A stretch of DNA of 64,000 bases. Origin: Selaginella moellendorffii. Lineage: Eukaryota > Plantae > Lycopodiophyta. Position 1 is the first letter of the stretch; each line of letters starts with the position of its first letter. This document shows, one piece after another, positions 4,418 to 52,694 of this stretch. The notes beneath the pieces are model-generated. The model was not told where the DNA came from, ran no database searches, and worked only from the letters and a program-made list of their open reading frames with translations. The translations under genes and the position numbers were made by a program. The stretch is from contig NW_003314277.1 in assembly GCF_000143415.4 (NCBI RefSeq), positions 1,000,224-1,064,223 on the forward strand, read 5' to 3'.

Positions 4418-5010
4418 TGTAAGCAACCAAAGGGAACGATTCGAGAGACGATCCATGGGGTTCAAATATAGAGGGAAAGGGCCCATGAACAAGAGTGCAC
4501 CCCCTTTTCCAATCGGTCAAGGGTCTTGGGATAGTTGGAGTTAATCGTCCTTGGGTTTGAATAGTACTGGGCTGGGTGACCTCCCGGGAAGTCCAAATTC
4601 AGGAGCTTACATTTGGTATCAGAGGGGTCTTGGGTCCGACTCTGTTGGTTGGCTAAGGGAATCGCACCACATATTGATTGACATCTGGCTGGTCCAGTTT
4701 GCTCCCGCTGGGCTCGACCCGAGGGGTAGAGTGTCAAGAGAGCGAGGCTCTCGGGAGAGCTGCGGCTCTCAGCTTCCGTTCACGAGGGCGTGAACTTGCA
4801 GGGAAGCGTGGTGGATTGTAAGCAACCAAAGGGAACGATTCGAGAGACGATCCATGGGGTTCAAATATAGAGGGAAAGGGCCCATGAACAAGAGTGCACC
4901 CCCTTTTCCAATCGGTCAAGGGTCTTGGGATAGTTGGAGTTAATCGTCCTTGGGTTTGAATAGTACTGGGCTGGGTGACCTCCTGGGAAGTCCAAATTCA
5001 GGAGCTTACA
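4418..5010 (+). mobile_element. Complete Cassandra-type TRIM (non-autonomous LTR retrotransposon with 5S rRNA-derived promoter in its LTRs)
   Basis: 194-bp LTRs at 4418-4611 and 4817-5010 (tgtaagc...gcttaca, one difference seen). PBS tggtatcagag at 4614, purine-rich PPT before 4817, 5-bp TSD ctctc (4413-4417 and 5011-5015), and a 5S-like box in each LTR. Confidence 0.93.
4539..4594 (+). promoter_or_regulatory. 5S rRNA-derived Pol III internal control region (A box-IE-C box); also at 4938-4993 and 5297-5352
   Basis: agttaatcgtccttgggtttgaatagtactgggctgggtgacctcccgggaagtcc aligns without gaps to the 3' half of plant 5S rRNA as recalled (AGTTAAGCGTGCTTGGGCGAGAGTAGTACTAGGATGGGTGACCTCCTGGGAAGTCC). 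Confidence 0.88.
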
Positions 5011-5570
5011 CTCTCTACAAGCACACCTTTGAAACCACAATAAAGGTTTGAGCATGTTTGGATTTGTAAGTCTCCTTTGCTATGTATGGCGTACTATTGG
5101 ATCAATGCATTCCATGGCACTACATCATGGAAGGCTATGCTGACAAGATCATCTATACCTGGCCACATGTCATTTCCCACAAATTAACATAAATAACAAA
5201 ATTAAGGATTGCATGGGGTTCAAATATAGAGGGAAAGGGCCCATGAACAAGAGTGCACCCCCTTTTCCAATCGGTCAAGGGTCTTGGGATAGTTGAAGTT
5301 AATCGTCCTTGGGTTTGAATAGTACTGGGCTGGGTGACCTCCCGGGAAGTCCAAATTCAGAAGCTTACACTCTCTACAAGCACACCTTTGAAACCACAAT
5401 AAAGGTTTGAGCATGTTTGGATTTGTAAGTCTCCTTTGCTATGTATGGCGTACTATTGGATCAATGCATTCCATGGCACTACATCATGGAAGGCTATGCT
5501 GACAAGATCATCTATACCTGGCCACATGTCATTTCCCACAAATTAACATAAATAACAAAATTAAGGATTG
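4853..5570 (+). repeat. Tandem duplication of 359 bp (4853-5211 / 5212-5570) covering most of the 3' LTR plus flanking DNA
   Basis: Near-identical direct repeat; both units start catggggttcaaatatag and end ttaaggattg. Confidence 0.92.
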
Positions 5571-16640: not shown

Positions 16641-17639
16641 TATCATCTATAAATGGATGGTTTGATAGAATGGTTTGTAAAGACTTTCAAAGAGATAATA
16701 ATGAATATATAAACTTTTAACATTTAAATTGCAATAATTATTTGCATTTTCTCTGGTATATATATGTCATTATAGTGCATCCTATCTCTCTCCCCTTAGC
16801 CAACTAAAAAGGACGCAATTACTTAATGAAAGAGCCTTTAGTGGCTATTTTATCCCCATTTATCCCCTAAAGTTCTAATGATTCACGATAATAATATATC
16901 AAAATTTTATCCCATGATTACATGCATTACAGTTATGAAAGTGTAGATTTTTATTAATGCTTTACTATATAAATTTTTATATAGTTATAATTTTAAACTA
17001 TGAATAAAGTTTAATTTGCCTTCACAAATGCATAAGCTACTAATGCTACATTTTGAGATTAATATTTGGCAAGCATTTTTCCATTGATCCAAGTGAAGTT
17101 TACTTAACACTTATGCAAAAATAACATTAAAACTCTTACCATCATCCAATTGTAAAGTAGAAAGTAAATTAATTAGAATTTGTATATTTTCTCAATCTTA
17201 CTATATATGCTTTATCCAAAGGGCTCTTTCTTCAGTGTAAGTGACTATATGAAGTGTTCTGGCACAAGTTTATGAAATTTGGCACAATATTTAACAAATT
17301 GATCCTCTAAAAATTGTATATATACAATAGTTAAAATATTTCATATAAAAGGATCAAAAATTACATTACATCCGAATGTCAACATCCTTTAATAGGTGAG
17401 CTTTAGAAAGATCTGACATCCCAGGAAAAGAAATGGGACTATACATCCTTTTCTAAAAAACAGATGGAATACAAAATGTACAAAATATTTGATTACTCAT
17501 TTATATAGAAGAGTGAAATCCAGCAACAGGGCAACCAAATCTTTTTTCAGGACTAGAAAATCTGCTCCGTGATTACCCTTTGCAGGCAGATGTTTAGTTT
17601 TAATTCTTACAACAAGGGATGACCAGCTTTCTCTTTTTC

Positions 17640-19616
17640 TTACCTCTTTCTCTGCGGTGGCTTCTTTCCATTCAGACGATGGTCTCTTGCAACCAGGAGA
17701 TCAGCCTCAAAACCAAGGCTCCTTTCAAACTCGTGCAGCAAACAAACTTCAAGCTCAGAGCAGATGCTCACCACCTTTCTCGTCCAAAGAATCCTGTGCA
17801 CGCCTGCTCTCGCCAAATACCTATCCGCGGACTCGGGCATGTCAAAGTTGATAACATGCTGCCTTCCACTGTAGATTATGTTGGTGATTAGAAGCAAACC
17901 ACGCTGGCAAAAAGCCCGATTCGTCTCTTCAATGCAGTGCTGTGGCATGCCAGTGTGTGTTGCAGCCACTTCAAAACCCGCACTTTCCATCCCAGAAGCA
18001 ACCAGTTCCACCTGCGATACCGAGTTGCAGTACACTGTCACTGTATCGCTCCTGATCCGAAACAACTTCCACACTTCCCCGAGCTTGGCGAGCTTGTCAC
18101 TGGCGCTCTTGACAGCTGCATAGAAGTGCTTGACTGAGCTTAAGGTGATGCCTGGCCTGGGAATCCTTGCAGTCTCGCCCTTGCAAAACCTTGTTACAAT
18201 GTCTTCTACGTCGGGAGATGGGTTTAGGGAGTGGATCCCCAAGATCACGTCTCGGCTCCAAAGGATGGAGCATATTGCCTCCACATGTACTTTGTGTGTC
18301 GAAAGAATCACATCCGTCTCCACCAGGACCGCTCTGTGTGGCTTCCAAGTCGTGCTGGCCCCGCACAGTGCTTCCTGCATCCTGTCCGGAGTCCCGATTA
18401 CAATTCCGGGTGAAAGTTCATTCATGATCGCTGGCTCGCTGAGGTAAGTCACCTTAACTTCAAACAGTCCCAGGACGTCCACGAAGGCCTGCAACAGCTC
18501 CAAAAGCTGAGGAATCCGGTGGCCTGGAGCGAGAACTATTGAGGCGGTGCTTGTTGAATCGGGAATGAGGCCCGGCATGAAGGCCAGGATGCCAGACCAG
18601 TCCTGGCACACAACGTTGCGTCGAAACACGGAGAAATTCTGGACCGCATTGCAGAAGCACGGGTCAAGGAAACCAGAGCAACACGCTGCTTCTGAAACAA
18701 TCAAAGCGAACTCCAGATGAAGAAAACAGAAAGAAGCGAAGATACATACCTGGGAGTGACAACTCTATAGCCCGCAATAGCTCTTTGCTCATGTTGATCG
18801 CTTCCCAGGGAGCAAGGTAATTGATTACATCCACCTTGGCAGGCCTGAAAATACAAAAGTTTGGGTGAGGCTAAACAAGGAAGGCAAACCTGCAAGGGGA
18901 AGGTTTCAGTGATACCGGGAGACTGAAAAACAGGAGGGACTCTACCAGGTCCATAACCTGTCAAGCACACCGTCAGATCGACTAAAGCACTGAAAGGAGC
19001 AAAACACCTACTCGGCTGAAAAACTCGGGGTTGTCGTCGTCAACAAGAACAAGCGCTAGAAGTGTCATGCTGGCCTTCAGCTTGCGAGCCTCTTGGGGGC
19101 TCGCCACAACTATATCCAGACAATCCAGCATCCACTCGTGCTCCTCCATGCTTCCCGCCAGCTTCCAAGGGTGGTAGTAGCAACGCAAAGTGTTTCACAT
19201 TGGCTGGAGCTGTGACGACGAGCATGTTGTCAAAGACGTTGGATCTCGGCCTGACCAAACGCAGCAGTAGCTCGAGGAGGCGCACGGACTTGACCGGAGG
19301 CGGAGCGTCCTTGAACTCTACAAAAAGGAGTTTTAGATAAAAGAGAAGCTTTTTTTTACGGTTTTCTACCTTTGCAGCGCTCAATTCCGCGGTAGATCGA
19401 ACAGATGTTGTCCCAGATACTGTGCTTGGACAAGTTGCCAGGGATGACAGAGCAGTTGAGGATGATGCCATGGTAACCAAAGAGGAAATCCGAGAGAGAG
19501 AAAGCATCAGGCTCTCGTTGCAATTGAATTGGAGCTTGCCTGCGGGATAGCACCGAATGAAGGAGAAAAGGACTTGACGGCACCAGGAGCTCGAGGAAAC
19601 ACACGGGATCCTCCAT
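17640..19616 (-). pseudogene. eIF4A-like DEAD-box pseudo-helicase, copy 1 (5+ exons; frameshifted)
   Basis: 354-aa main exon aligns by eye to eIF4A. Exon 2 has an 11-bp deletion (~19186) relative to copy 3. Confidence 0.75.
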
Positions 19617-20764
19617 GCTCTATGGGGAGTATATATTAAAGGGTAAATCCACAAGGGGGAATATTTTCGATGGCTATGGCGTCGCATGGACTCTCTCGGC
19701 GGCTCTGGATTATCCCCGCTCCAACGCCGTGGCTGGATGATCGCCATGGCGATCAAATGCAAACAGGTACGGCACTTCGCATATGGGGGATCATTACAGT
19801 CACAAATCTTACTCCGCCGCCTCATCATGTTTCAGATGCACGAAACAAAGAGCGAAGAAAGTTGCAAAATGCCCGCACGTCAACGAGGATTTTTTGGCAT
19901 CAACCTCCTTTTCCTGTTTTTGTAGGGGCAGGCAGAAAAATTGAAGAGCCGTGCTAAAAAGTTGTTGGTATATAATGCTCTTAGTTGAGTCCTGAATACA
20001 GGTGCTAGATTTCGAAAAACAACTTTTAAATCTAATCGAGTGGTTGTAGCCCACAGATATCTGAATTCTTCTTTTTTCATTTCCAGTACGATTTCGAGAA
20101 GGAGAAACTTGCACTTGAGGTAGAAGAGGAGAGAAAAGCGCGGCTGGATCGTGAAAAGAGAGGAATAACAGAAGACTGAAAATCTGAGCTCTTTAGTCTT
20201 AAGAGAGGTTTTTATGTTATTTGTTCTGAAATAATCTTTTTAGCAGGTTTACGTGGCATTTTGGACGCATCAGCTAAGGTTCTGGATAAGATCATTGTTT
20301 TATGTGTCCTTATTGCTTGTTTTTAGGAATGCCTTTATTGGAGCCCGTCATTTCTGTCGCATTCTCGTGACGAAATAATAAACAACGAGCAAGGACAGAC
20401 CAAATGTTGCTGATGAAGATCGCCTAAACCAAAACTCGATGCGACTTCAAACACAGAAGACCAGGCAGTTCCGTGTAATGAGCTTGTAAGTCTTGCGTGC
20501 TGCAAAGCTTAATGCTCCAGATGCAGCAGGTCTAAATTAAAGATGGAAGGAACTCCAGGTCTAAATCCCGTTTTGATTCAAAGGTAAAAGCTCGTCTTCC
20601 TCTTCTCAATAAAATGTCACTGCTTTTTTTCAGAGCAGCGGATGCGACTGAGGAACTCCCTTATTTACTATCATAATTGAAATGGCTACTTAAGCTGCGG
20701 TGTACTCATTTATGCTTGATTTCCAGGAGCATGAAACAGCTTCCTCGAGAGAAAATACAACCAG

Positions 20765-21163
20765 CTCAATGTGGGAGGGAGAGAGAACCTGCCACTTGTA
20801 TCTTGGATCGTCAGAAGGAAGCTGGGCGTCCGAGCCTGCTGTAGGCGACAGAGAAGCCGAGCAATGGGACTGGATCTTTATGCCGTGGCCGCTGACTACT
20901 GCACTCTGGGTCTAGACGGCGAGGACATCGAAATTGAGCTGGCGTGGGATCCTGTGAGGCGAGCACCCAGGGTATGTGTCCTCGATTTCTCTGAAGCCCT
21001 TCACAACGATCGACAAGGCATTCTCTACAAGGAGAGTTTCTACCCGAGGCCGTCCCAGGAGCTGCTGTGGGCAACATTCGCGCTTCACTACAGCGATCAC
21101 AAGTTCGCGCGGTGGGTTGAAGAGATCTACAGAGGAGCTCTTCGAGAATTTCTCATAACCTAA
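20765..21163 (+). pseudogene. DUF3669-like kinase-fold gene, copy 1 (5'-truncated, internal deletions)
   Basis: GLDGEDIEIELAW...VCVLDFS...ESFYPRPSQELLW, homologous to 33280-33709. Confidence 0.75.
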
Positions 21164-21850
21164 GATCATTGTTTTTTTTTTTTAGAGATCTATGTTGTAT
21201 CAAATTCTTGCCTCTCTTGACCTAGCCCAAGCGCTACGGCGACGTACAATGTATGTTCCTTTCCTGAGTTTTGCAATATTTGGATATCCAGTTAATATGC
21301 GCGAATATTCGCCATCAATTTCTCTGGAAAGTTTAGAGTTCGTGGGTGATGGTGATAACTTATATAATTTCTCAGTTGACAATGTCTATATCACCACAAG
21401 CTTTGCAAAGAGATCACCATTTCTATTAGCCAGAGTTGCAACTATGCCAAACTCATAATACTCAAGTTTATAAAACTCGCAATTGAATTTGAAGAAATAA
21501 GTAATGAAGTTAGAGTTTTTTGGTGGATGGGCTGGGATGTAAACATCAGGCATGCACAATTTTTGGTTTGCTGAATATTAAGCCAAGTCTCCAATTGCAA
21601 GGCGTGGCCAATCGGCTCGCTAGAGAGCACGCCACGCAGCACAACTCTTCCGTGTGGCCGTTTACTCCTGATCTAAGCATTAAGGTAGTGCATCAAAGAG
21701 CTGGCTGTCAACACTGGCCTGGTGCCTCTCTAGCCTTTTGTAAGAGCTAGATGCTAAAAATAGACTCTCGGGCTAAGTATTGTATACTAATAATATAATT
21801 TACAAAAAAAGATGTATAATTATTGTTGACACCCCTTTTTCTCCTGCAAA

Positions 21851-22110
21851 GGGCAACCAGATCCTGGGACATAGAAAATCTGTTCAGTGATTACCCTTTG
21901 CCAGCAGATGTTTAGTTTTATTTCTTTTACTAGTGACCAACTTTCTTTTTTTCTTGCCTCTTTCATTGAGGTGGCTTCTTTCCACTCAGATGATGGTCTC
22001 TTGCAACCAGGAGATCAGCCTCGAAACCAAGGCTCCTCTCAAACTCGTGCAGCAAACAAACTTGAAGCTTAGAGCAGGCTCACCACCTTTCTCATCCAAA
22101 AAGCCTGTAC
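21851..22110 (-). pseudogene. Orphan 3' fragment of the pseudo-helicase gene (fourth partial copy)
   Basis: Colinear with 17529-17800 and 22290-22460. Confidence 0.8.
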
Positions 22111-22276
22111 TGCACAAACTTGTGAAGAATCAAACTCGTAATCAAAGAGGCAGTCAGAGTGGTGATGTGGATTAGGACTGTAAGGTGGTGGAGCTACAGC
22201 ACATGTAGAGGATTTTGAGATCCTGAGAATCTCAAAGCTGGAGAAGATTATAGATTCCTAGAAAATCATTATGAAC

Positions 22277-25213
22277 TTACACATTATTCTTTTTCTTGCC
22301 TATCTCTAGCCGTGGCGGCTTCTTTCCATTCAGACGATGGTCTCTTGCAACCAGGAGATCAGCCTCGAAACCAAGGCTCCTCTCGAACTCGTGCAGCAAA
22401 CAAACTTCAAGCTCAGGGCAGATGCTCACCACCTTTCTCGTCCAAAGTCTCCTGTGTACGCCTGCTCTCGCTAAGTACTCATCCGCAGACTCGGGCATGT
22501 CAAAGTTGATCACATGCTGCCTCCCGCCGCTGTAGATTATGTTGGTGATTAGAAGCAAACCACGCTGACAAAAAGCCCAATTCGTCTCTTCAATGCAGTG
22601 CTTTGGCATGCCAGTGTGCGTTGCAGCCACTTCAAAACCCGCACTTTCCATCCCAGAAGCAACCAGTTCCACCTGCGATACCGAGTTGCAGTAGACTGTC
22701 ACTGTGTCGCTCCTGGTCCGAAACAACTTCCACACTTCCCCGAGCTTGGCGAGCTTGTCACTAGCGCTCTTGACAGCTGCATAGAAGTGCTTGACTGAGC
22801 TTAAGGTGATGCCTGGCCTGGGAATCCTTGTAGTCTCGCCCTTGCAAAACCTTGTTACAATGTCTTCTACGTCGGGAGATGGGTCTAGCGAGTGGATCCC
22901 CAAGATCACGTCGTGGCTCCAAAGGTTGGAGCATATTGCCTCCACATGTACTTTGTGTGTCGAAAGAATCACATCCGTCTCCACCAGGACCGCTCTGTGT
23001 GGCTTCCAAGTCGTGCTGCCCCCGCACAGTGCTTCGTGCATCCTATCCGGAGTCCCGATTACAATTCTGGGTGAAAGTTCATTCGTGATCGCTGGGAGGC
23101 ATGCCACTTGAACTTCAAACAGTCCCAAGCCGTCCACGAAAGCCTGCAACAGCTCCGCAAGCTGAGGAATCCTGTGGCCTGGAGCGAGAACGATTGAGGC
23201 GGTGCTTGTGGAATCGGGAATGAGGCCCGGCATGAAGGCCACAATGCCAGACCAGTCCTGGCACACAACGTTGCGTCGAAACACGGGGAACATCTGGACC
23301 GCATTACGGAAGCACGGGTCGAGCAAACCAGAGCAACATGCTGCTTCTGAAACAATCGAAGCAAACTCCACCAATCACTAGAAGAAAAAAGAAAGAAAGA
23401 GAAAGAAGCGAAGATACATACCTGGGATTGACAACTCTATAGCCCGGCGTAGCTCTTTGCTCATGTTGACCGCTTTCCAGGGAGCAAGGTAATTGATTAC
23501 ATCCACCTTGGCAGGCCTGAAAATACAAAAGTTTGGGTGAGGCTAAACAAAGAAGGCAAACCTGCAAGGGGAAGGTTTCAGTGATGTCGGGAGGCTGAAA
23601 GACAGGAGGGACTCCACCAGGTCCATAACCTGTCAAGCACACGGATCAAGTAACGCACTGAAAGAAGGAAAGGAACAAAACACTTACTTGGCTGAAAAAC
23701 TCGGGCTTGTCGTCGTCAACGAGAACAAGCGCGAGAAGTGTGATGCTGGCCTTCAGCTTGCGAGCCTCTCGAGGGCTCGCCACAACTATATCCAGACGAT
23801 CCAACATCCACTGGTGCTCCTCCATGCTTCCTCCAAGGGTGGTAGTAGCAACGCAAAACCTCCACAAAGTGTCTCACATTGTCTGGAGCTGTGACGACGA
23901 GCACATTGTCCAGGACGTTGGATCTCGGCCTGACCAAACGCAGCAGTAGCTCGAGAAGGCGCACGGACTTGACCGGAGGCGGAGCGTGTTGAGATTAGAT
24001 GCTCAGGTAGATGCTTAGCTAGGCAGTTAGGATGATGTGGCATTAGGCAGTTGCCACAGCCCATGTATATATAGCTTCATATATACAATATGAGCAGTCG
24101 TTGCCAGCAGTCGCTGCCTTTTTTATCATGGTATCGGAGCACAGATCTTGAGGACCTGTGAAGGATGAAGAAGAAGAAGAAGCTTCCAGATGCCAACGGC
24201 AGAAGCAGAGTAGCCTAGAGAGCAGCAACAAAGCAATGGCAGAGCCATACCAGCAGCGAGGAGTGGCAGATAGTAGCGACTCAGAAGCCCTGGAGCGGCA
24301 GAAGATGCTGATATGCTCCAAGAAAGGAGCAGCAGAGCAGCCAAGAAGCCCAGGAGCAGCAGAGCAGTGACTCAGCAGGCCGAGAAGCAGAATGGCGGCA
24401 GGAGTGGCCAAGATGCTCGAAGAGAGGAGCAGCAGCAGCCAAGTGAGCGGTGGCAGATAGCAGCGGCAGAGTTGGCTGAGAAGCCCAGCAGTGGCAAAAG
24501 AGCTCCAAGAGAGGAGCAGCAACAGCCAAAGGAGCGATGGCAAAAGAGCTCCAAGAGAGGAGCAGCAACAGCCAAAGGAGCAATGGCAAAGCAGCCAAGA
24601 GTGGCAGAGGCAGCAAGCCCTAGAGCAACAAGATGTAGTTGCTTTGAGTGGGAGTCAGTGTCAGTTGTATGCATGCTGAGTATCTTATGTTCAGGCTTTG
24701 TCTCAGTTTGTAGACACGCCTGAGTGGGAGTGTTGAGATTAGATGCTCAGGTAGATGCTTAGCTAGGCAGTTAGGATGATGTGGCATTAGGCAGTTGCCA
24801 CAGCCCATGTATATATAGCTTCATATATACAATATGAGCAGTCGTTGCCAGCAGTCGCTGCCTTTTTTATCAGAGCGTCCTTGAACTCTACAAGAAAAAA
24901 GGATTTTTAGATCACAAAGAAGTTTTATTTACGGTTTTCTACCTTTGCAGCGCCTGATCTCCTGGTAGATCGAGCAGATGTTGTCCCAGACATTGTGCTT
25001 GGACAAGTCGCCAGGGACGACAGAGCAGTTGAGGATGATGCCATGGTAGCCAAAGAGGAAATCCTCGAGAGAGAAAGCATCAGGCTCTCGCTGCGATTGA
25101 ATTGGAGCTTGCCTGCGGGATAGCACCGATTGACGAAGACAAGGGATGCTTGACGGCACCAGGAGCTCCAGCGCTGCCGCTGCCTGCCGATGGAAACACA
25201 CGGGATCCTCCAT
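22277..25213 (-). pseudogene. eIF4A-like pseudo-helicase, copy 2 (disrupted by TRIM insertion and an 8-bp deletion in exon 2)
   Basis: 365-aa main exon; exon 1 MEDPVCFHRQ at 25213; exon 2 split at 23986/24873. Confidence 0.8.
23987..24872 (+). mobile_element. Complete young TRIM (non-autonomous LTR retrotransposon)
   Basis: Identical 142-bp LTRs 23987-24128 and 24731-24872 (tgtt...atca), PBS tggtatcggagc at 24129, PPT tgagtgggag, TSD gagcg (23982-23986 and 24873-24877). Confidence 0.95.
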
Positions 25214-25512
25214 AGCCGCAAGGGTAGAGAGAGAGTCACCCTATTGGGAGTATATACTATATAGTAAGGGATTCGAACGATACGGAGAGAGAAATGGCGC
25301 CAAATATGCATGTAATCATTGATGGCTATAGCGCTCTCGCCATTCTTCTCGCCTTGCTGTTCGTGTTTGCTGATCATCACAGTCACAAATCTTGCTGCGC
25401 CGCAGCCGCCACCGCCACTGGATCGCCAGGAATCCGACCTGCGGGAGAGCAAAGTGTCGCGCTTAGAGCTTCTCTTAGTTGAGTCCTGAAAAAGAGTCAA
25501 TCCCTTTTCCCA

Positions 25513-27620
25513 GGTACTGTGTTTGCGTATGGGCAAACCAGTAGCGGGAAGACTTACACGATGCAAGGTTCTGCTAATTATCCTGGTATCATCCGAGACG
25601 TTTTTGACAGCATATTTTACTGGAGATCGAATCTCGGAATTGTGAGTTGCTGACTTCTGTTCATTTAGAATTCTAACAGGGAGTTCCTAGTTCGTGTTTC
25701 TTACATGGACATTTATAACGAAGAGATGAACGGCCTCTTAACACGAGAATTTCAAGGTAACATTTGCAAGTATTTCTCACATTCTTACACTTCATTGTAC
25801 AGAAGGGGTTGTTTGTTGCTGGACTCAGAGAGGAAGTTGTTAACAGTCCTGACCATTCTTAAAGCTTGGAGAAGGTACTAGGAACGCCATAGAGGGGTAC
25901 TGACATTGTTGCAGCACATCGTCATTTTGGCGAGACGAACATGAACAGATACAGTAGTCGATCTCACTCTATATTTCGAATGGTATGTATCGTGAATCAC
26001 GCACACAAGTCATTGACAACAACAGAAACAGGACTCTGTTCGAGTGTGGTAAGCCTAGAATGTTACGATCTATACGTTTTCACTATAACTTGTGCTTTTC
26101 GATCTAGCCAGTTCTGAGCATGTTGCAAAAACAGGAGCTGGAGGAGTTCGACTTAAGGAGGGACAACACATTAGCAAGAGTCTCATGACTATTGGAACTG
26201 TTAGAAATAAGCTGAGCGAGGGTCCAGGAAAAGGTAACACTTTCCTCCTCCTAGCTTCATTTTTTTTTCATAAAGGTTATATAGCATACCTGGACAGCAA
26301 ACTGATGCGCATTCTTTAATCCTCTTTAGACGAACGCGCTGGACCAAAAACATGTTTTTGAAAGAATGCCGCAGTTCGATATTGAATGCAAGTTGTTTAT
26401 CCACAATGCAGAATGCTAGCTTCAGGCTACCGAATCTTTGAGAACATACCACGGTCGTTTTGGTCCAACAATGCCAAAGAAGCCACCAGAGGTTATCTTT
26501 GATCTAGGGCTCATGAACCAGGCCAAGAGATTCTTTAATGAGGTGCCACAGCGAGATCTTTGCTCGTAAGGTCACCATTACACTGGGTGACGTAACACTT
26601 CAACGACTCAGTGCGTCAAAGTTTCGTATCATCTGTTTCAGATACATACAGACGAAACAAACATAACACTTCAATTTGCCTCGAGATCGAAAAAAGCTTC
26701 ACATGCACGCACGTCAATGAGGTATGTTTTAGTTGGCTGCCTCCTTGATCCCGGAGGCGCAGTTTGCAGCTGACCAGCCTTCTCATGCGTATTTTTTCAT
26801 TTGCTGTTTTTGTAGATACAGCTCTCTTAAGCGGCAGGAAAAAGAAATTAAAGAGCTTCGTGAAAAGTTGTGGTATGTTTGCTCTTAATGTTCTTATTTG
26901 AGTCTTGAAAACTTATTTTAGGGGCTATGTTCAGACGATTAACTTTCTCCTTTTGCAGTAAGAATATCTGAGTTCTTAAGTTCAACAGCTCAAGATGACC
27001 ATTCGAAGGTGGTTTGTCCTCGGTTTGAATGGTATTTGTTCTGGAGTACTTTTATCCGTACTTTTATCAGCAGGTTACTCTCCGACAGACATGGTCCCCG
27101 CGACAAGTCATTTTGGACGCATGAGCTACAGCGAGATTAACAGAAAGGTGGTGATTTTCAGTCAGAAAACGATCGTCTTCGTGAATGTAGGACTTTGCAG
27201 GTAAATAGTTATTGTTTGATGTTGGATGTTTAACAATTTTATAATTTTAGTTGCGAGCAACTGCTTAATGAAATTCAGAAACGGAAGACAATGTATGAAT
27301 TGGCCGTTGACCCGTGTTCTCGTGGAGGACAGACGCTTAACGTGTGAATTGTTCATCGGGATATATGCTTGATTTGTAGGTGAAAGGTTTACTTTCTTAT
27401 AGGAACGCTGGGCTCTCAGATAGCAATCGATGGAACTGCAGTTACCAAACTTCAAAAAGTTCCAAAACGTGTACATAACAATTACATGAAGAGAAACACA
27501 GTCGAGGATCAAGAGGAAGCCAACAACGAGCTTAACTGTCACAGGTACCATGAAAATATCAGCGAAAAACATGTTGCGATAGCAAATAAAATTGCTTTTC
27601 CTCTTGAATTCATAGGAGCG
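25513..27620 (+). pseudogene. Kinesin-7 (CENP-E-like) motor gene, intron-containing pseudogene
   Basis: [16 protein letters not shown] (P-loop), REFLVRVSYMDIYNE, ETNMNRYSSRSHSIFR, DLASSE...EGQHISKSL, DSKLMRIL*. Stops and frameshifts present. Confidence 0.85.
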
Positions 27621-27714
27621 GAGGTATGAATTACAGATATGGAAAAGTCAAGGAGCTCTCTTTTGCGTCTTCTGCTATCCAGAAACTATGTTTTGGAGTA
27701 TTTATTGAGAAAAC

Positions 27715-28400
27715 CCCTTTTATCCGAATTACCGATCGCGTGATCCAGCTCGAACTCCTGGACAAAGGAGTGCACGGGAATATGAAGTTTGCTTTCAAGA
27801 AGAATCAGAGGAGGAGGACTTGGAGCGCGAGTATGATACGCACAAGGTCGTGTTCGAGTCATGTAGCCGCGTTTCTTCCACCGTCCAGGTCGCTCGCCTC
27901 ATCGCATTCTTTTCTAGTGCAAACGAGATTGCAAGATCGCTCAACGCTTGAAAGCCTACGATGTTCCGGTCATCGTCATGGAGAAGCTGGAGACGTTTGC
28001 CATTGTCGGTTCTCTCAGATCACTGGTGGGAGGGGATCGTCAAAAGGAAGCTGCGTGCCCGAGCCTGCTGTAGGCTTCACAGAAGCCGAAGCAATGGGAC
28101 TGGATCTTTGCGCCGTGGCCGCTGACTTGGGGTGATTCACTGCACACCTCCACCGCACTCTGGGTCTGGACGGCGACGACATCGAAATTCAGCTAGCGTG
28201 GGATCCTGTGAGGCGAGATCCGAAGGTGTGTCCTTGATTTCTCTGACGTGAAGCCCTTCACGACGATCGACAAGGCGGCGAGGAGCATTCTCTACAACGA
28301 GAGTTTCTACCCGAGGCCGTCCCAGGAGCTGCTGTGGGCAGCGTTAGTGCTTCACTACGGTGATCACAAGTTCGTGTGGCGGGTTGAAGAGAATCTATAA
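27715..28400 (+). pseudogene. DUF3669-like kinase-fold gene, copy 2 (frameshifts and stop)
   Basis: DRVIQLELLDKGVHG..AFK and GLDGDDIEIQLAW, NESFYPRP lie in different frames. Confidence 0.8.
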
Positions 28401-28669
28401 ATATCATCTATAAATAGATAGTTTGGTATCAAGACTTTCAAAGAGATTTTCAATATTTAAATGGCAGTGGTTATTTCCCTTTTCTCTAGTGTGTGTATGT
28501 CATGTTAATGCTTTACTATATAAATTTTTATATAGTCATAATTTTATCTTACCAATAAAGTATAAGCAAAATGACTTAAAAGATAATTTATAGAGTTCAA
28601 ATATAAAAAGAAAAAGCTTATAAATAAGAATGCACTTCATTTTTCAATCGATATTTAGGGTTAAGCATT

Positions 28670-30125
28670 TGTAAGTTGACTAAATTTTCCACATTTAACC
28701 ACACTTCTAACCACTTGGAGGAGTCTCACTCACAACCTCTGTAAGTTCTATTCTGGACTTAAAGACTTGTTAGCTCCAAGAATGGCATCTATGCCACTTA
28801 ACCATTACACTTGGTCTAAGTGCTCCATGTGTCAAATCCCAAAACCGACACCCTAAGGTACCATCGATATATCAGTCCGTTATGCTAAGGCTATGCCCAT
28901 TCACTTTGGTCACATCGGTGGTCTAACACCACCTACATCACAATCCCGTCTCTCAAAGATTGAGTCATCCATCCATGAGTGATCATCCTAAATCTACTTC
29001 TTAACATCTTTAGGATGCCTGCAGACAAGGGGAATAACCTTCCCCAATATCTCTTTTCCGGTCCCCACTAAGTTCCTTTTTGTCTATGGCCGCATTCGCC
29101 AATACTACCACTGGATGAAGGCTCACAGGCCCAACCACCAAGTCCCACTGTCCACTAGGACTTCCTTACTGTATGATTGTATCCTTGGTTGCCACTCCAG
29201 AGGACTACTTCTCTTCCTTTCCACAGTTTGGGATTTTAGGATAACATTTCAAAACACCGTGGCTCTACGCGAGCCTCCTGGGTACTTTCCCCACCTTCCG
29301 CCTTTAGGTGCTCTAGCCATGAGCTTAGAGCAAAGTTCTGTTGAGCCACGTCAAATATCCAAGTAGGTAGTGCCACCCACACTTGGATTAGGAGCATCGA
29401 TTATTCGATCTTTCGAGGGAACTAAAGTTGGCTTTTGAACACTTCGTCAAGCTATCCCGATTATCAGTTTATATTCACTCTAACCTTGGACTTCCCAATG
29501 GTCATCCCATCACCTAACAGCTGGGTATGGCATTCTTGGGCCAAACTGGCTCTATTGGGTTCCAACCCCCACACTCTCCCTACTATACTTTTGGAACCCT
29601 TTGCAGCCCGCACCCCCCCCCCCTTCCCCCCCCCCCCGGGGGACAATTGCTTTGGGCTTTCATTCAATAGCCTATATTAGTATTTGGACTCGGACTTGGT
29701 CTTGGTTCCGATTTTGGACTTGGACTCGGGCTCGGTCTCGGTCTTGGATCCATCTCGGGTCCATCTCAGACTCCATCTCGGGTCTATATTGGGTCCATCT
29801 TAGATTCCATCTCGAACTCCATCTCGGGTCCATCTTAGGTCCATCTTAGACTCCATTTCAACTCCATCCCAAACTCTTCCATGTGTCATGTGTTGGTCCT
29901 CTTGTGTCCCTTTTTTAAAGACTCACTTATTGCTCGTTTTGTGTTTGTTCTTCGAGCCCTTTGTTGGGAATTCCACTCTCGCTCTCGGCCTTTCAAGTTA
30001 GAACTTTTAATCCAAACGTGTTACACTCGTTTGACTTTCGCTTTGGCCACTACCACGTGGCACCTTTTCGGCTCCACTTTGGGGCTTAGGGATTTTGTGT
30101 CTCACAACATCCTTGGGTTAAAATA
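28670..30125 (-). mobile_element. LTR-type element with 11/12-bp repeat array, inserted in the third duplication unit
   Basis: Contains the rc of the shared tgaaagcccaaagc...gggg module (~29575-29665). Interrupts homology between 16650-17000 and 17020 onward. Confidence 0.65.
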
Positions 30126-30853
30126 GTACTAAATCCATGGGTTTAAATTTAAAACCTTATTTAAGACCTTACATAGAGTTTTATTTGCTTTCACAAACAC
30201 ACAAGTTACTAATGCTATGACAAGTTACTAATGTTATATTTTGAGATTAGTATTTGGCAAGCATTTTTCCATTGATCCAAGTGGAGTTTACTTAACACTT
30301 ATGCAACAATAACATTCAAACTTTTATTATCATCAAATTTATAAGTAGAAAATAGATTATTTAAAGTTAGTATATTTTCTCAATCTTACTATATATGGTT
30401 TATCCAAATGGCTCTTTGTTCAGTGGAACAGACCATATAAAGTGTTTTGACACAAATTTATGAAATTTAGCACAATATTCAATAAATTGATCCTCTAAAA
30501 ATTGTATATATACAATAGTTAAAACATTTTATATAAAAGGATAAAAAAATACATTGCCATCATTTTATGTATCCCCAATGTTAACATCCTTTAATAGGAT
30601 TTATTGCTATGAGCTTTGAAAAGATCTGACATCCCAGGAAAAAAAAATAGACTATACATTCTTTTCTCAAAAACAGATGGAATACAAAAATGTACAAAAT
30701 ATTTGATTAGTCATTTATATAGAAGAGTGAAATCCAGCAACAGGGCAGCCAAATCTTTTTTCAGGACTGGAAAATCTGCTCCGTGATTACCCTTTGCAGG
30801 CAGATGTTTAGTTTTAATTCTTAGAACAAGGGATGACCAGCTTTCTCTTTTTC

Positions 30854-32868
30854 TTACCTCTTTCTCCGCGGTGGCTTCTTTCCATTCAGACGATGGTCTT
30901 TTGCAACCAGAAGATCAACCTCGAAACCAAGGCTCCTTTCAAACTCGTGCATCAAACAAACTTCAAGCTCAGAGCAGATGCTCACCACCTTTCTCGTCCA
31001 AAGGATCCTGTGCACGCCTGCTCTCGCCAAATACCCATCCGCGGACTCCGGCATGTCAAAGTTGATAACATGCTGCCTTCCACTGTAGATTATGTTGGTG
31101 ATTAGAAGCAAACCACGCTGGCGAAAAGCCCGATTCGTCTCTTCAATGCAGTGCTGCGGCATGCCAGTGTGCGTTGCAGCCACTTTAAAATCCGCACGTT
31201 CCATCCCAGAAGCAACCAGTTCCACCTGCGATACCGAGTTGCAATACACTGTCACTGTATCGCTCCTGATCCGAAACAACTTCCACACTTCCCCGAGCTT
31301 GGAGAGCTTGTCACTAGCGCTCTTGACAGCTGCATAGAAGTGCTTGACTGAGCTTACGGTGAAGGCTGGCCTGGGAATCCTGCTCGTCTCGCCCTTGCAG
31401 AACCTTGTGACGATATCTTCTACACCAGGAGATGGGTCTAGGGAGTGGATCCCCAAGATCACGTCTCGGCTCCAAAGGATGGAGCATATTGCCTCCACAT
31501 GTACTTTCTGTGTGGAAACCAGCACATTGGTTTCTACGAGAACGGCTCTGTGTGGCTTCCAAGTCGTGCTGGCCCCGCACAGTGCTTCCTGCATCCTGTC
31601 CGGAGTCCCGAGTACAATTCCGGGTGAAAGTTCATTCATGATCGCTGGCTCGCTGAGGTAAGTCACCTTAACTTCAAACAGTCCCAGGCCGTCCACGAAG
31701 GCCTGCAACAGCTCCAAAAGCTGAGGAATCCGGTGGCCTGGAGCGAGAACTATTGAGGCGGTGCTTGTTGAATCGGGAATGAGGCCCGGCATGAAGGCCA
31801 GGATGCCAGACCAGTCCTGGCACACAACGTTGCGTCGAAACACGGAGAAATTCTGGACCGCATTGCAGAAGCACGGGTCAAGGAAACCAGAGCAGCACGC
31901 TGCTTCTGAAACAATCAAAGCGAACTCCAGATGAAGAAAACAGAAAGAAGCGAAGATACATACCTGGGAGTGACAACTCTATCGCCCGCAATAGCTCTTT
32001 GCTCATGTTGATCGCTTCCCAGGGAGCAAGGTAATTGATTACATCCAACTTGGCAGGCCTGACAGTACAGAAGTTTAAGAGAGGTTGAGGCTAAACAAGG
32101 CGAACCTGCAAGGAGAAGGTTTCAGTGATACCGGGAGACTGAAAAACAGGAGGGACTCTATCAGGTCCATAACCTGTCAAGCACACCGTCAGATCGACTA
32201 AAGCACTGAAAGGAGCAAAACACCTACTCGGCTGAAAAACTCGGGGTTGTCGTCGTCAACAAGAACAAGCGCTAGAAGTGTCATGCTGGCCTTCAGCTTG
32301 CGAGCCTCTTGGGGGCTCGCCACAACTATATCCAGACGATCCAGCATCCACTGGTGCTCCTCCATGCTTCCCACCAGCTTCCAAGGGTGGTAGTAGCAAC
32401 GCAAAACCTCCACAAAGTGTTTCACATTGGCTGGAGCTGTGACGACGAGCATGTTGTCAAAGACGTTGGATCTTGGCCTGACCAAACGCAGCAGTAGCTC
32501 GAGGAGGCGCACGGACTTGACCGGAGGCGGAGCGTCCTTGAACTCTACAAAAAGGAGGAGTTTTACATAAAAGAGAAGCTTTTTTTTTACGGTTTTCTAC
32601 CTTTGCAGCGCTCAATTCCGCGGTAGATCGAACAGATGTTGTCCCAGATACTGTGCTTGGACAAGTTGCCAGGGATGACAGAGCAGTTGAGGATGATGCC
32701 ATGGTAACCAAAGAGGAAATCCTCGAGAGAGAAAGCATCAGGCTCTCGCTGCGATTGAATTGGAGCTTGCCTGCGGGATAGCACCGAATGAAGGAGAAAA
32801 GGGATGCTTGACGGCACCAGGAGCTCCAGCGCCGCCGCCTGCCGATGGAAACACACGGGATCCTCCAT
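30854..32868 (-). CDS. eIF4A-like DEAD-box pseudo-helicase with an extra degenerate RecA-like domain, copy 3 (apparently intact)
   Basis: Five GT-AG-spliced exons can be joined in frame (MEDPVCF...CK/EFKDAPP...FFSR/VMDLIE...PCR/PAKLD...LSLP/...GFLDP...). A possible short last exon would end at ~30761. Confidence 0.75.
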
Positions 32869-32920
32869 AGCCGCGGGGTGCCGAGTATATGGGTAGACTA
32901 TTTAGGGTAAATATAGCAGC

Positions 32921-33709
32921 ATGGACTTGGATTCCTTGTTTGTCCGAGGGGAAGATCGCGTCATCCAGCTTCACTACCTCGACACAGGAACGCACGGCAG
33001 CGTTTATTGCTGGAGGAACTAGGCATTCAAGGTGGGATCCCCGGAGAATTCCCTGGGGGATCTGGAGCGTGAGTTCCAAGCGCAGAACTTGGTGTTTCAA
33101 TCGTGGGACAGTGCTTCTTCCACCATCGAGATCACCCGGCCGATCGCATTCTTCCCCCGTGCAGATAGGATGGCAGATTCCCTTGGCGTGGAGCTCCGTG
33201 GCTTGAAAGCCTACGATGTTCCAGTGATGATCACGGAGAAGCTCGAGCCTTTGCCGTCGTCGATTCTCTCCGATCAGTGGTGGGAGGGAGAAAGAACCTG
33301 CCGCTTGTATCTCGGATCGTCGGAAGGAAGCTGGGCGCCCGAGCCTGCGGTAGGCTACACAGAAGCCGAGGCAATGGGACTGGATCTTTACGCCGTGGCG
33401 GCTGACTTGGGGCGATTCACGGCACACCTCCACCGCGGCCTGGGTCTGGACGGGGACGACATCGAAATTCAGCTAGCGTGGGATCCTGTGAAGCGAGCAC
33501 CCAAGGTATGTGTCCTCGATTTCTCTGACGTGAAGCCCTTGACGACGATGGCGAGGAGCATTCTCTACAACGAGAGTTTCTACCCGAGGCCGTCCCAGGA
33601 GCTGCTGTGGGCAGCGTTCGCGCTTCACTACGGCGATCACAAGTTCGCGCGGCGGGTTGAAGAGATCTACAGCGACGAGAAGGAGGAGCTCTTCGAGAAT
33701 TTCTCATGA
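32921..33709 (+). CDS. Intronless DUF3669-like atypical protein-kinase-fold protein, copy 3 (single in-frame TAG at 33020-33022)
   Basis: LDTGTHGSVY (Gly loop), AFKV (Lys), LEREF (alphaC), CRLYLG, HLHRGLGLDGDDIEIQL, VLDFSD, NESFYPRP..LW..F...Y. Confidence 0.7.
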
Positions 33710-34030
33710 TCTAAGATCATTGTTTTTTCTTTTTCTTAGCTAGAAAACTATAGAGATCTATGGCTGTTGTATCAAATTCTTGCCTCTCTTGGTGTTAGCT
33801 AGCCCAAGAGCTACGGAAACTTACAATGTATGTTTCTTTCCTTCGTGATCGGAGTTTCGCAATATTTGGATCATCCATAGCCCGCGAATATCCAGTTGCC
33901 GGGCGAGAATATGCCAGTTTTTGTTTCCCGCGAATATTCGGCGTCAAACACACAAAAAAGTTTGTGTGGCCACGTAGGGCTTTCTCTGGAAATTTTAGGG
34001 TTCGTGGGGGGCGTGTTTGCTGGGGCGGAT

Positions 34031-34900
34031 ATGGGGATCGGCGACGCACCTTCGGATCTCTTTGCAAAGCTCGCGGCCGCGGGCGGCGCAACCAGATCCT
34101 CCTCCATCGGCGCCCGCGGCAAGAGGAAGTCGGATTGCTGCGCGCCGCTGGAATGCCCCCTCTCCATGAAGCACGCCAGGGCCGCCGACGGCTCCAAGAT
34201 CCCTAGTGCTGCTCCTACCCCCGCCGCCGGGATCGCCACTGCCAGCGCCGCCTCGCCGCCACCCAATCTTCTCCACCACCACCACAGTCACTCCGCCGCC
34301 GCCGCCGCCGCCGAGGAGGAGGAATCCGACCTCGCCCTGGCCTCCGGCGCCGCCGCGGTTGGGGCGATCGATGATTCGTATCCCTACGCTTGCGAGGGCG
34401 AGGATGGCAGCGGCAGCAAGCGGCGGATCTTGCCGCTGTGGGTGTCGACGATCGATGGCGGCGAGCACGAGTGGGAGGCGACGGCGCCCTGGAACGTCTT
34501 CACCAAGGGTTTCTTCCACGTCCGTGGCTCGGATCTTCGCGCGGGCTACTGGGTCTACTACAAGGGCCACTGCGTCGCGCGGGCGCTGGTGTGGAACGAC
34601 GAATTCGACGAGATGAGGTACGAGCACCAGGGCTACTCGCCGATGATGCGAGGATTGGACAAGGGCAGCGTGTCGGCGGTGTCGGTCGGATTGATGGCCA
34701 TCCTGGACGCCATCGCCTGGTCCAGGAGCTTGCTTCCATTCGCGCAGTGGCACATCTACGTGGACAATGTGGACGCGCTCAAGCTGGTGGACATGTACCA
34801 GAGGAACCTCCAGTTCATGAAGTTCCACCCCGAGAGGCCGCTGCTGGATCTCATCGTGGACGCTGCGCAGTCTGGCCGGATCCACTTGCACAAGAAGTGA
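34031..34900 (+). CDS. Intronless protein with low-complexity N-terminus and C-terminal RNase H1-like fold lacking catalytic residues
   Basis: GC-rich ORF. VFTKG (cf. YTDG), AGYWVYY (cf. AGYGVYF), VGLMAILDAI (cf. AELMAAIEAL), IYVDN (cf. IYTDS), IHLHK. Confidence 0.6.
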   Translation: MGIGDAPSDLFAKLAAAGGATRSSSIGARGKRKSDCCAPLECPLSMKHARAADGSKIPSAAPTPAAGIATASAASPPPNLLHHHHSHSAAAAAAEEEESDLALASGAAAVGAIDDSYPYACEGEDGSGSKRRILPLWVSTIDGGEHEWEATAPWNVFTKGFFHVRGSDLRAGYWVYYKGHCVARALVWNDEFDEMRYEHQGYSPMMRGLDKGSVSAVSVGLMAILDAIAWSRSLLPFAQWHIYVDNVDALKLVDMYQRNLQFMKFHPERPLLDLIVDAAQSGRIHLHKK

Positions 34901-35452
34901 CGGGAGTGGATTGGATCGGATCCATCGTCGCAAGAGAAGCCATGATCGATCAATCAATCCAACAGGAAGGAAAAGGAAGAACGCAAACAGAATCCAGCAG
35001 GGAGAAGGAAGCGATGAAGGCGAGAAGATGAAAATTGGATTTTTTACAGCCGAGAAAAAGGAAGGAAAAAAAAAAAAGGAGTGAAAAGAGAGCTACTTAT
35101 TCTTCGTTTCTCCTCAGTGTTTATACCCAAAGCATCAAAGAGCGCAAATTCCTTTTTGTAAATACCAAACAATAGGAAGAACACCCTCTCTTTTCTTATC
35201 AGCTTATCTATCTTGTTAACACAAAACACGCCCAAAATTTTCACAAAAAAAGAGTTAGAGAAGAAACCAAAACTTTTTTTTTTCTTTAATAGTACCTAGC
35301 CTGTGCTGCTGCGCTGCTGTTTATGCTGGCTGCCAGCAAGATGAAAGCAAAAGAACCAAGTAGAGAAGAAGTAGAAATAGAAGAAAAGTGAAGAAAAAAA
35401 ACGAGAAAAAAAAAATTTTCGCCACATACCGACGCGATGATCCATCTTTCGA

Positions 35453-37609
35453 TCAAGTATGAGCCGTTTGAGCAGCCGACGAGGACGCTGGCGGTGGCTG
35501 CTGCGAGTAAGACTCTGATCCTGGAGCACTGGCAGCAGCAGAATTCGCAGCGGCACCCTCGGCTGCTTGAACATACTGTCCCGATTGATCGTAGGCATAG
35601 GACTGATCATACTCGTAGCCATAGCCAGTAGCACCAGCGTACTCTTGATCCTGGTTGTAGCCGCCCGCCTGGTTGTATCCCGATTGATCGTAGCCTTGCG
35701 GGTACTGCTGGTCGTACGGTGCTTGCTGGTCGTAGTAGTACCCCTGCTGTCCATAGTTGTAGTTTGGATCGCCCTCGTTTTGCTGGCCGCCACCCTCCGA
35801 GTTTTGGTAGTAGTCGTAAGAGCCACCCTGCTGTTGGTTTTGGTCCCAGTAGTTTCCATACTGCTGTGAGCCGTAGCCTTGCTGCTGCTGGTAGCCATAG
35901 CCGGACTGGGACTGGGACTGGCCACCCCAGGCCGGTCGAAAGCCTTGCTGGTAGCCTCCGGCCCTCGAGCGTCCCTGCAAGGTCAGTGTATACTTAGCAT
36001 AAACAGACACAAGCACAGGCATATAGAATGCAAGGAAGAAAGTATAAGAACAAAGAAGGGTTTTCGAAAAGCATAGATAATGTGACTACTCTAGAGACCT
36101 CAAGAAACATACCATTGGGAAAAGAGTATCATGGTTTTTTTTTCACACTGCTGATGAGACGAACTTTTGCCTCCTAATGCTTACTGTTGAAGGTTAGAGC
36201 CGCACAGAGAGAACATAAAGGGGACGGCAAATTTTCGCAAGGTTGTCTTACCAAGCAAGCAAAATGAAATGGTTACAAGGCAGGAGGACGACACGACTTC
36301 CAAGAATGCTATCACCAAACCTGAAATACTGATAAGAAATACCTCTCCAATGACATCTTTGATCATGTCAGTTGCAATGTCGGTCTGTTGCTTGGTCCCT
36401 ACTAACGTCACGATCCTCTCCGTGGCACCTGGCTCCGTTTCTCTATCATGTTGCACCTAACAGGAGAAGAAAAACGTTAGGAAAATCTCCAGCCCGTTGG
36501 CTAACAAACAGCCCCTCAACTATAGATTTGATACCTGAATTCGTGCCCCGGATGTTTGTTGGAGATTTCTAATGGTCTCACCACCTTTCCCGATGATCAG
36601 ACCGACCTGTGACGAAATCTAGATTAAAATAGCTCCAGCAAAGACTGCATAAAGGACCTTGTTATTTGGAACCCGGACGTGTATTGGATCTCCAACACCG
36701 CCAGTGCCTCCACCTCCCACAGGTCCTCCCACGATACCCTGCTGCAAAACAAGCGTTACCGTCAGCTCCCTTGCAAAAGAGAAAGACCAAAAGGCCAGAG
36801 AAGAAAACAAAAAAGAAAGACTTTCGCGTACATCTCCCACGACTTCTCTGATAAGTTGCTCGGCCCGAGAAATCTGTTCAGGGGTACCAGTGAGCTCAAC
36901 CTGCCTTGTTACTGCGCCCGGATCAGCCTCGGCATCTCTGGTCACTTGAATCTTAGCACCGGATTGCTGTTGCAAGGTCCTGATAGTCTCACCTCCCTTG
37001 CCAATCACGAGCCCAACCTGCAAAACCAAAAAAACTCCATATCACCATAAGATCAAAAAAAAAAAGAAAGAAAAAGAAAAACAACAACAACAAAGGAACT
37101 TCTCGATACAAACCTTGGTATTAGGAACGTCCACTCTCTTGGTCTGGTGCTGGACGTACGAATCTGAAGGAGGCCGATCATCTAAATGAAAATTAAAAAG
37201 GGGAAGAAGATTGAGGATCGTCCTTTCTAGCAGCAATCAACCAACAGTAGCGAGTACCTTGATGCCCATAATGTCCCCCGGCGCGCTCCACATTGCTGGC
37301 CACGCCATCGTTGTCATCCGCGCTCGTCCGGGCTCTCTTGTACTCCACTTCCCCAACCAGGCGCGCGGCAATCTGCTCGGCGCGCTGCTTCGCCGCCTCG
37401 AAGCCCGAGAGAGGAGGAGGGACGCTCTTGTAAGACGGGCGCTGGCTGTCGGAAGAAGGCGGCGGCGGCGGAGGAGGACGCTGCTGCTGTGGCGGCTGCC
37501 GCGGTGGCGCCTCCACTGGCTCCTCGTATTTCCGCTTACTGGAGGCCATCCGTGGGGACGAAGATCGCCGCTCGTAGTCGCCATGAGCTGGGCGCCCGCT
37601 CTCCGCCAT
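35453..37609 (-). CDS. KH-domain RNA-binding protein (FUBP-like), multi-exon
   Basis: Two KH domains (VGLVIGKGGETIRTLQQQSGAKIQV; VGLIIGKGGETIRNLQQTSGARIQ) and a Y/Q/G-rich tail. Confidence 0.9.
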
Positions 37610-50546: not shown

Positions 50547-52266
<1,720 letters not shown>

Positions 52267-52694
52267 CGTCGACCTTAAATATCGCGGAACGATTCGGGGC
52301 ATATTCCACTACCTGTTTTCCCTCGCCAAGAAAGAAGCAAAGAAATTAAGCGCGTTAGGTGTCGAGTCTCTACCAAATTCTCTCTTTCCTTCTCTACCAA
52401 TAGGCTGGGAGGCGTTTTGATATTTTAGGGTTCTTGGGCATTGCGCGGCCGCCATTATCGATCGGCTTCTTGGGCGCGCAGTGGAATTTTGAATGGAATC
52501 GAGGAGGCCAGGGCGCTGCGCGTCGCCGACGAGCGATCAGCTCGTGTTCTTGCATGTGGATTGCGATTGCGAGCGCCAGGTTTTCTTGTTTCCTGCCCCG
52601 ATTGATCGATTGATTGGGAAATTGCGGTCGTTTCTTGGTATTTCAGGGCGAGGGGAATTGTTCTGCGATTCTGGCCGGGAGCTGACGGCGAGCG

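Follow-up and report, generated by a model that had tools for sequence, protein, structure and literature searches.

Gene content and repeat structure of the array

We analysed a 64,000-nucleotide stretch of the Selaginella moellendorffii genome (the window; contig NW_003314277.1, positions 1,000,224 to 1,064,223, forward strand), which contains a tandem array of two genes: on the minus strand an eIF4A-derived pseudohelicase, a helicase-like protein that has lost its catalytic motifs, and on the plus strand a gene related to the kinase-fold family DUF3669. A block of ~4.7 kb is present three times in tandem at 80-93% identity overall, and all three units lie head-to-tail. Self-BLAST and a repeat finder place the helicase-bearing segment at 17034-19616, 22288-25219 and 30222-32868 (88-93% identity) and the DUF3669-like segment at 20771-21290, 27946-28397 and 33201-33877 (80-84% identity), in agreement with a sequence-only reading of this DNA that had proposed three such units. 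The same reading had described units 1 and 2 as wrecked for both genes and unit 3 as intact or close to it, which is right with two nuances: the helicase core open reading frame (ORF) is open in all three units, units 1 and 2 being broken in their N-terminal exons only, and the unit 3 kinase-like gene holds an in-frame stop codon. In window positions, the six gene copies are as follows.

30847-32874, minus strand: unit 3 pseudohelicase gene, intact and expressed, as judged from RNA contigs, joined exons and motif alignment
22277-25213, minus strand: unit 2 pseudohelicase copy, disabled, annotated as P0004
17640-19616, minus strand: unit 1 pseudohelicase copy, disabled, annotated as P0003
32921-33709, plus strand: unit 3 DUF3669-like, kinase-fold-family gene, with ATG at 32921, in-frame TAG at 33020-33022 and stop at 33707-33709
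27626-28397, plus strand: unit 2 DUF3669-like pseudogene, interrupted by several frameshifts and stops
20771-21163, plus strand: unit 1 DUF3669-like remnant, annotated as P0010

Within unit 3 the two genes are arranged head-to-head (divergently), with 52 bp between their start codons (CAT at 32866-32868 on the minus strand, ATG at 32921-32923 on the plus strand); this spacing had been noted before and was confirmed by reading the positions directly. No inverted repeats of at least 60 nt bounding the units were found by the repeat finder, and neither terminal inverted nor long direct repeats were seen at the unit borders. Beyond the genes, the units differ by the following insertions and fragments.

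21842-22108, minus strand: extra partial copy of the 3' end of the helicase gene, just downstream of the unit 2 copy (repeat finder, self-BLAST)
23987-24872, strand not applicable: small long terminal repeat (LTR) element of the terminal-repeat retrotransposon in miniature (TRIM) type, 886 bp, lying within exon 2 of the unit 2 pseudohelicase copy
25483-26316, plus strand: kinesin motor-domain pseudogene fragments, between the helicase and kinase-like copies of unit 2
28566-30221, strand not applicable: dispersed-repeat insertion of ~1.65 kb in the left flank of unit 3, seen by comparison with unit 1

The kinesin fragments consist of four stop-separated pieces matching positions 75-288 of the Kinesin motor domain (Pfam E down to 3.5e-13), and the other haplotype has an annotated kinesin fragment at the corresponding position.

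The pseudohelicase and the turnover of its copies

The coding sequence of the unit 3 pseudohelicase, from 32868 to 30854, is split into five exons (32868-32601, 32544-32228, 32173-32106, 32058-31964 and 31905-30854), which are separated by four GT-AG introns of 47-58 nt and end with a stop codon at 30854-30856. Joined, the exons form one open frame of 599 codons, comprising a 249-aa N-terminal extension, whose exons match no Pfam family, and a 350-aa core. Expression was assessed from RNA-derived contigs of four runs. Contigs from three independent studies fall on unit 3 at no less than 97% identity, with pieces of 467 and 470 nt free of mismatches, and contain four joints whose plus-strand ends are CT..AC, equivalent to GT..AG introns on the minus strand. 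Because 21 letters at the 5' end of one contig match the sequence just upstream of the start codons of the unit 2 copy and its allele, one or other of these two is transcribed too. The public gene model P0001, which fuses the unit 3 helicase with antisense parts of unit 2, is chimeric and receives no support from the RNA contigs.

The core ORFs of units 1, 2 and 3 (354, 365 and 354 aa, respectively) are 87-100% identical to annotated S. moellendorffii proteins named 'ATP-dependent RNA helicase eIF4A'. Their only Pfam match is Helicase_C (PF00271), at 24-25.6 bits against a cutoff of 23.5, and none of them matches the N-terminal DEAD domain (PF00270). Nevertheless, residues 219-482 of the phmmer query still align to the RecA1 region of eIF4A-I (chain residues 70-345), and among solved structures eIF4A chains match best (E 4.5e-9), followed by eIF4A-III, Dhh1/DDX6 and DDX39B. 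Alignment to a normal DEAD-box protein shows that motif I (Walker A, AxxGxGKT) has lost its GKT loop, the site reading QDWSGI-LAFMPG; that motif II has changed from DEAD to VETN in unit 3 and to VETD in units 1 and 2; and that IHS stands in place of SAT (motif III), motif V is shorter than normal and ARAGVHRI replaces HRxGRxGR (motif VI). Since the P-loop is deleted and the DEAD, SAT, motif V and motif VI sites are degenerate, the predicted protein cannot work as a conventional ATPase and lacks what marks an active DEAD-box enzyme. The earlier description of the protein as an eIF4A-derived pseudoenzyme is thus upheld, with motifs lost and eIF4A as its nearest solved relative.

Like eIF4A and other minimal DEAD-box helicases (eIF4A-III/DDX48, Dhh1/DDX6, DDX39B), the pseudohelicase has two RecA-like domains, with ~270 residues aligned, and it retains GF..P...Q (Q-motif site), TPxR (motif Ib) and VINFDMP..(D/E)YL.R.G before motif VI. 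It differs from eIF4A in being only ~25% identical, in having neither a Pfam DEAD-domain match nor catalytic motifs, in carrying the 249-aa extension and encoding its entire core in one exon, and in being found in S. moellendorffii only. A word-based search returned a single weak match outside this species, a normal DEAD-box protein sharing 25% identity.

DEAD-box-derived pseudoenzymes are few, and those that have been studied are scaffolds for RNA-processing machines. Two of them, yeast Utp25/Def (PMC9539457) and Caenorhabditis elegans MUT-15 (bioRxiv 10.64898/2026.09.04.749402), combine a helicase fold whose catalytic motifs are dispensable or lost with an N-terminal accessory region, and are conserved as non-enzymes; no sequence relationship between either of them and the Selaginella protein was shown. 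Whereas each of these is a single conserved essential gene, the Selaginella family is lineage-specific, multicopy and variable in copy number. By analogy with them, the pseudohelicase would most likely act as a non-catalytic scaffold or adaptor.

Selection was estimated by the Nei-Gojobori method as the ratio of non-synonymous to synonymous change (dN/dS), using copies from the window array, from the allelic locus on the other haplotype (L001, GL377566.1) and from a dispersed locus (L002). Comparing the core among paralogous copies in the array and at its allelic locus yields dN/dS values of 0.23-0.33; comparisons with the dispersed L002 copy yield 0.32-0.50, and the two allelic pairs have 0.15 and 0.44. 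Synonymous change exceeds non-synonymous change in all three within-window pairs (Fisher p 4e-5 to 6e-10), between unit 2 and its allele (p 9e-5) and between unit 3 and its allele (p 0.04). The N-terminal extension gives 0.4-0.6 between paralogous copies and 0.15-0.25 for allelic pairs. The low ratios in the core indicate that the pseudohelicase has been kept as a protein under purifying selection, and that units 1 and 2 acquired their lesions recently.

The state of the two other copies was read by projecting the unit 3 exons onto each. In unit 1 (projected exons 19616-19370, 19317-19012, 18957-18890, 18844-18750 and 18691-17640), exon 2 has lost 11 nt, which puts it out of frame, and the 354-aa core ORF (17640-18704) is open. 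In unit 2, exon 2 carries an 8-nt deletion together with the LTR-element insertion, leaving the 365-aa core ORF (22277-23374) open and the copy 886 bp longer than the others; the allele of this copy on the other haplotype has neither lesion. The inserted element has all the features of a TRIM or small LTR retrotransposon: two LTRs of 142 bp (23987-24128 and 24731-24872) that are 100% identical and have TG..CA ends, a 5-bp target duplication (GAGCG) flanking it on both sides, and, directly after the 5' LTR, the sequence TGGTATCGGAGC, which resembles a primer-binding site and which we take to be of the tRNA-Met type. Because its LTRs are identical and the element is missing from the other haplotype, the insertion is very recent.

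The L001 locus is collinear with the window over ~12.8-36 kb and has two units in place of three. Synonymous distance pairs unit 2 with one L001 copy (0.05) and unit 3 with the other (0.046), and the L001 copy that pairs with unit 3 occupies the position of unit 1 and shares the flank of unit 1. We infer that this difference in copy number, together with the mosaic similarity, reflects unequal crossing-over and gene conversion. The fast turnover that had been proposed for the locus is borne out by haplotypes with three and two units, an element with identical LTRs in unit 2 and several fresh lesions. In its head-to-tail units, haplotype difference in copy number, mosaic similarity and mixture of intact and broken copies, the array resembles plant resistance-gene clusters; unlike these, it contains no genes of a known immune-receptor class, and nothing linking it to defence was found.

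The DUF3669-like partner and pairing at other loci

The kinase-like gene is damaged by stops, frameshifts or deletions in five of five copies over both haplotypes. In unit 1 only the C-terminal half is left, with internal deletions and a frameshift, and AT-rich sequence replaces the 5' half; both L001 copies have deletions; and homologues align straight across the TAG of unit 3. For nearly all pairs of these copies dN/dS is 0.4-0.8, with 0.27-0.28 between unit 1 and its allele (relaxed). No RNA contig from the four runs covers 32937-33741. Co-regulation of the two genes at this locus, which the sequence-only reading had suggested, is not supported, as the helicase gene is transcribed and spliced and no contig from the four runs covers the kinase-like gene; nor is mutual dependence, as the partner is broken in every copy while the helicase core is under purifying selection. 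At the window locus only the helicase-like gene is both intact and covered by contigs.

The membership of the partner in a kinase-fold family is supported by its similarity to true DUF3669 proteins and by a structural model of one of them. The unit 3 ORF scores 17.4 bits against PF12417, below the cutoff of 22, and in an exhaustive search of 1.8 billion proteins it matches the true PF12417 proteins P0013, P0015 and P0016 with E values of 1.6e-5 to 4e-4; these three distant relatives come from S. moellendorffii, the green alga Haematococcus and a metagenome. Like DUF3669 proteins, the unit 3 ORF aligns over its full length, has the six residues that are invariant in the family (G, D, E, N, P and F, including those in LDGDDIE and LDF), fits the LDGxDIE pattern and has DF where kinases have DFG. 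Unlike them, it is only ~24% identical, falls below the Pfam cutoff, misses the internal FFxxxNFPL segment and is interrupted by a premature stop, with no expression detected in the four runs. PF12417 is itself a loose model, which extends to a domain of vertebrate zinc-finger proteins with a different context (PMC6923878).

For the family representative P0013, an AlphaFold2 model with a predicted local distance difference test score (pLDDT) of 92 matches kinases only in a fold search, led by PRPK (Z 13.8, root-mean-square deviation 3.6 Å over 189 residues) and Bud32 (Z 13.7), followed by RIO kinases and then aminoglycoside phosphotransferases (APH). This points to a Bud32/RIO-like atypical kinase fold for the DUF3669 family, as predicted on P0013 and not on the product encoded in the window. 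A family search from the Selaginella member among these three returned another four annotated proteins of S. moellendorffii, including alternative models or alleles of one gene, along with proteins from Klebsormidium, a chytrid, a basidiomycete and many ascomycetes. DUF3669 kinases are thus not specifically fungal and are long established in the green lineage, and the earlier label 'fungal-type' is not supported for a family that is also present in Selaginella, Klebsormidium and Haematococcus. A fungal origin of the genome and a recent transfer from fungi were both considered and rejected, as the close proteins are all from S. moellendorffii and DUF3669 members occur in Klebsormidium and Haematococcus.

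The two families meet again at one other locus (L009, GL377634.1, 8001-12585), where an intact DUF3669 gene (P0022, of which P0023 is an alternative model) lies 1.4 kb from a gene for a 518-aa protein, tail-to-tail (convergent). This protein is 27% identical to the pseudohelicase overall and 31-33% over the second RecA domain (E ~1e-22), and it has the same deletions in the P-loop and motif V. Because the 27%-identical paralogue shares these deletions and adjoins an intact DUF3669 gene, the dead state is old, and the two families were already neighbours before the local triplication. Just upstream of the 518-aa gene lie Gag-like (CCHC) and RNase H-like ORFs.

Elsewhere each family stands alone. 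Pseudohelicase-type copies that look degenerate are found at L002/L006 (two scaffolds) and at L005 on the scaffold of the window, with no DUF3669-like sequence found within 10 kb; the L005 copy (GL377581.1, 9989-10912, P0007), which lies outside the window, is a fourth, degenerate core copy of 238 aa with ~83% nucleotide identity. Conversely, no helicase-like gene adjoins the canonical DUF3669 loci L003 and L007/L008 or those of Klebsormidium and Haematococcus. Copies of ~1 kb of the canonical DUF3669 gene, 84-88% identical, are present at three unrelated loci (L003, L007/L008 and L009), which suggests recent DNA-level dispersal of this gene alone. The sequence-only reading had proposed looking for head-to-head co-occurrence at independent loci; the two families are indeed neighbours at L009, an independent and anciently diverged locus, in tail-to-tail orientation, and each occurs alone elsewhere. 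With a handful of loci per family and a genome of ~100 Mb, two chance adjacencies are very unlikely. The simplest reading of them is descent from one ancestral block, with selection for linkage as the alternative.

Origin of the array, alternatives and neighbouring genes

We propose, with a probability of about 0.6, that the locus holds a living pseudohelicase gene and a dead kinase-like neighbour in a young, unstable array, in which the pair has been carried along by duplication. In this model, unequal crossing-over of a two-gene block would most likely have produced the tandem array. The first gene would be a lineage-specific, eIF4A-derived pseudohelicase with a working copy in unit 3 and recently knocked-out copies in units 1 and 2; the second would be a strongly diverged DUF3669 member that has become a pseudogene in every copy at the window locus on both haplotypes. 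The two genes would have been adjacent before the triplication, so that duplication at the window locus merely carried the pair along, and the array would since have been eroded by local recombination and a transposon hit. An RNase H-like gene that follows unit 3 would be an unrelated expressed neighbour. This plant lineage has a pseudohelicase family that is expressed and selectively maintained and whose copy number differs between the haplotypes of a single individual, which makes it well suited to studying how a new non-catalytic function evolves from eIF4A.

Several points weigh against this account. The TAG in unit 3 is read from the assembly, and the contigs cannot exclude a kinase-like transcript that is present at low level or degraded by nonsense-mediated decay. 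Unequal crossing-over is deduced from the copy difference and mosaic similarity, and the scaffold role is pure analogy. Finally, adjacency at two anciently diverged loci far exceeds chance and could reflect selection for linkage in place of passive inheritance.

This last point leads to the alternative that survives best, although we consider it unlikely: a coupled two-gene system, whether a kinase with its substrate or regulator, an immune decoy with its effector or a toxin with its antidote, in which adjacency was selected and of which the window is a decaying instance. Functional coupling of the two families is unproven and a minority possibility. It would account for families that adjoin both in the window and at L009 with members only ~25-27% identical, and for the fast turnover of the locus; and since the unit 3 kinase-like copy keeps the invariant catalytic-type residues, its death would be recent. 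However, the partner is broken in all of its copies here beside a constrained and expressed helicase core, the orientation is divergent in the window and convergent at L009, close paralogues of either gene occur alone (L002/L006, L005, L003 and L007/L008), and the algal DUF3669 genes of Klebsormidium and Haematococcus lack a helicase-like neighbour. A complex prediction for the helicase core (354 aa) and the unit 3 kinase-like ORF (225 aa), made without alignments, scored 0.00 and weighs neither way.

In its boldest form, which we hold to be doubtful, the dead eIF4A mimic and the Bud32/RIO-like DUF3669 kinase would cooperate in an undescribed, fast-evolving system, with the array as a birth-and-death hotspot. 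The kinase might then be regulated by the mimic or act on it, or the mimic might be a decoy guarding translation initiation, and adjacency would have been kept through an ancient duplication. Repeated adjacency to an unstudied atypical-kinase family offers a testable hypothesis for both orphan families, and L009 provides an intact pair.

It is improbable that the block was the cargo of a gene-fragment-capturing transposable element and that transposition, in place of recombination, built the array. The dispersed partial helicase copies at L002/L006 and L005, the ~1-kb canonical DUF3669 copies at L003, L007/L008 and L009, and the kinesin fragment inside unit 2 would fit such an origin; yet the units are not bounded by terminal inverted or long direct repeats, they lie head-to-tail and collinear with the two-unit allele, as unequal exchange predicts, and the sole clear transposon, the LTR element, was inserted into a unit and is not its carrier. 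Least probable of all is a wholly non-functional array in which the helicase-like copies are also pseudogenes and their transcripts noise, for although two of the three helicase copies are broken in exon 2, every catalytic motif is lost and no relatives were found beyond S. moellendorffii, the 599-codon, five-exon frame is open and canonically spliced in three studies, core constraint between paralogous copies is highly significant in the tested pairs, and derived deletions common to a 27%-identical paralogue imply that the dead state has long been kept.

The gene downstream of unit 3 lies outside the duplicated block.

33885-35040, plus strand: unspliced, highly expressed transcript with ORF 33896-34900 and likely start ATG at 34031 (high-depth RNA contigs)

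High-depth contigs cover 33885 to ~35040 without a joint, as expected of an expressed intronless gene. The transcript encodes an ORF of 289-334 aa that is present once, starts beyond the end of the repeated sequence and has a product 99.7% identical at the protein level on the other haplotype. A dead RNase H gene had been counted as part of the third cassette; an ORF does follow unit 3, and it is a separate expressed gene outside the repeat. ORF 33896-34900 has no Pfam match, even at a permissive threshold, and no sequence match in the PDB. Its neighbours in a protein language model fall in RNase H or RVT_3 clusters (0.86-0.90), which serves as a lead only, and a single-sequence AlphaFold2 model was unusable (pLDDT 38), so an RNase H fold is a weak lead. 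The public model P0011 (SELMODRAFT_411830), in which the kinase-like gene is spliced onto this downstream ORF, is chimeric and finds no support in the RNA contigs.

Convergent with ORF 33896-34900 is the end of a glutamine-/glycine-rich gene (35435-36022, minus strand), whose L001 allele is annotated with KH domains. Further downstream of the array, ORFs at 50866-53848 (plus strand) match ADH_N (E 4.7e-9) and Nucleotid_trans (E 3.9e-44) and represent ordinary plant genes. Elsewhere in the window, near-perfect tandem copies (98.7-99.5%) of a ~400-bp unit occupy 4418-5570, and an Rfam match to the C/D-box small nucleolar RNA SNORD36 lies at 62272-62354 on the minus strand (33.2 bits against a gathering score of 30).

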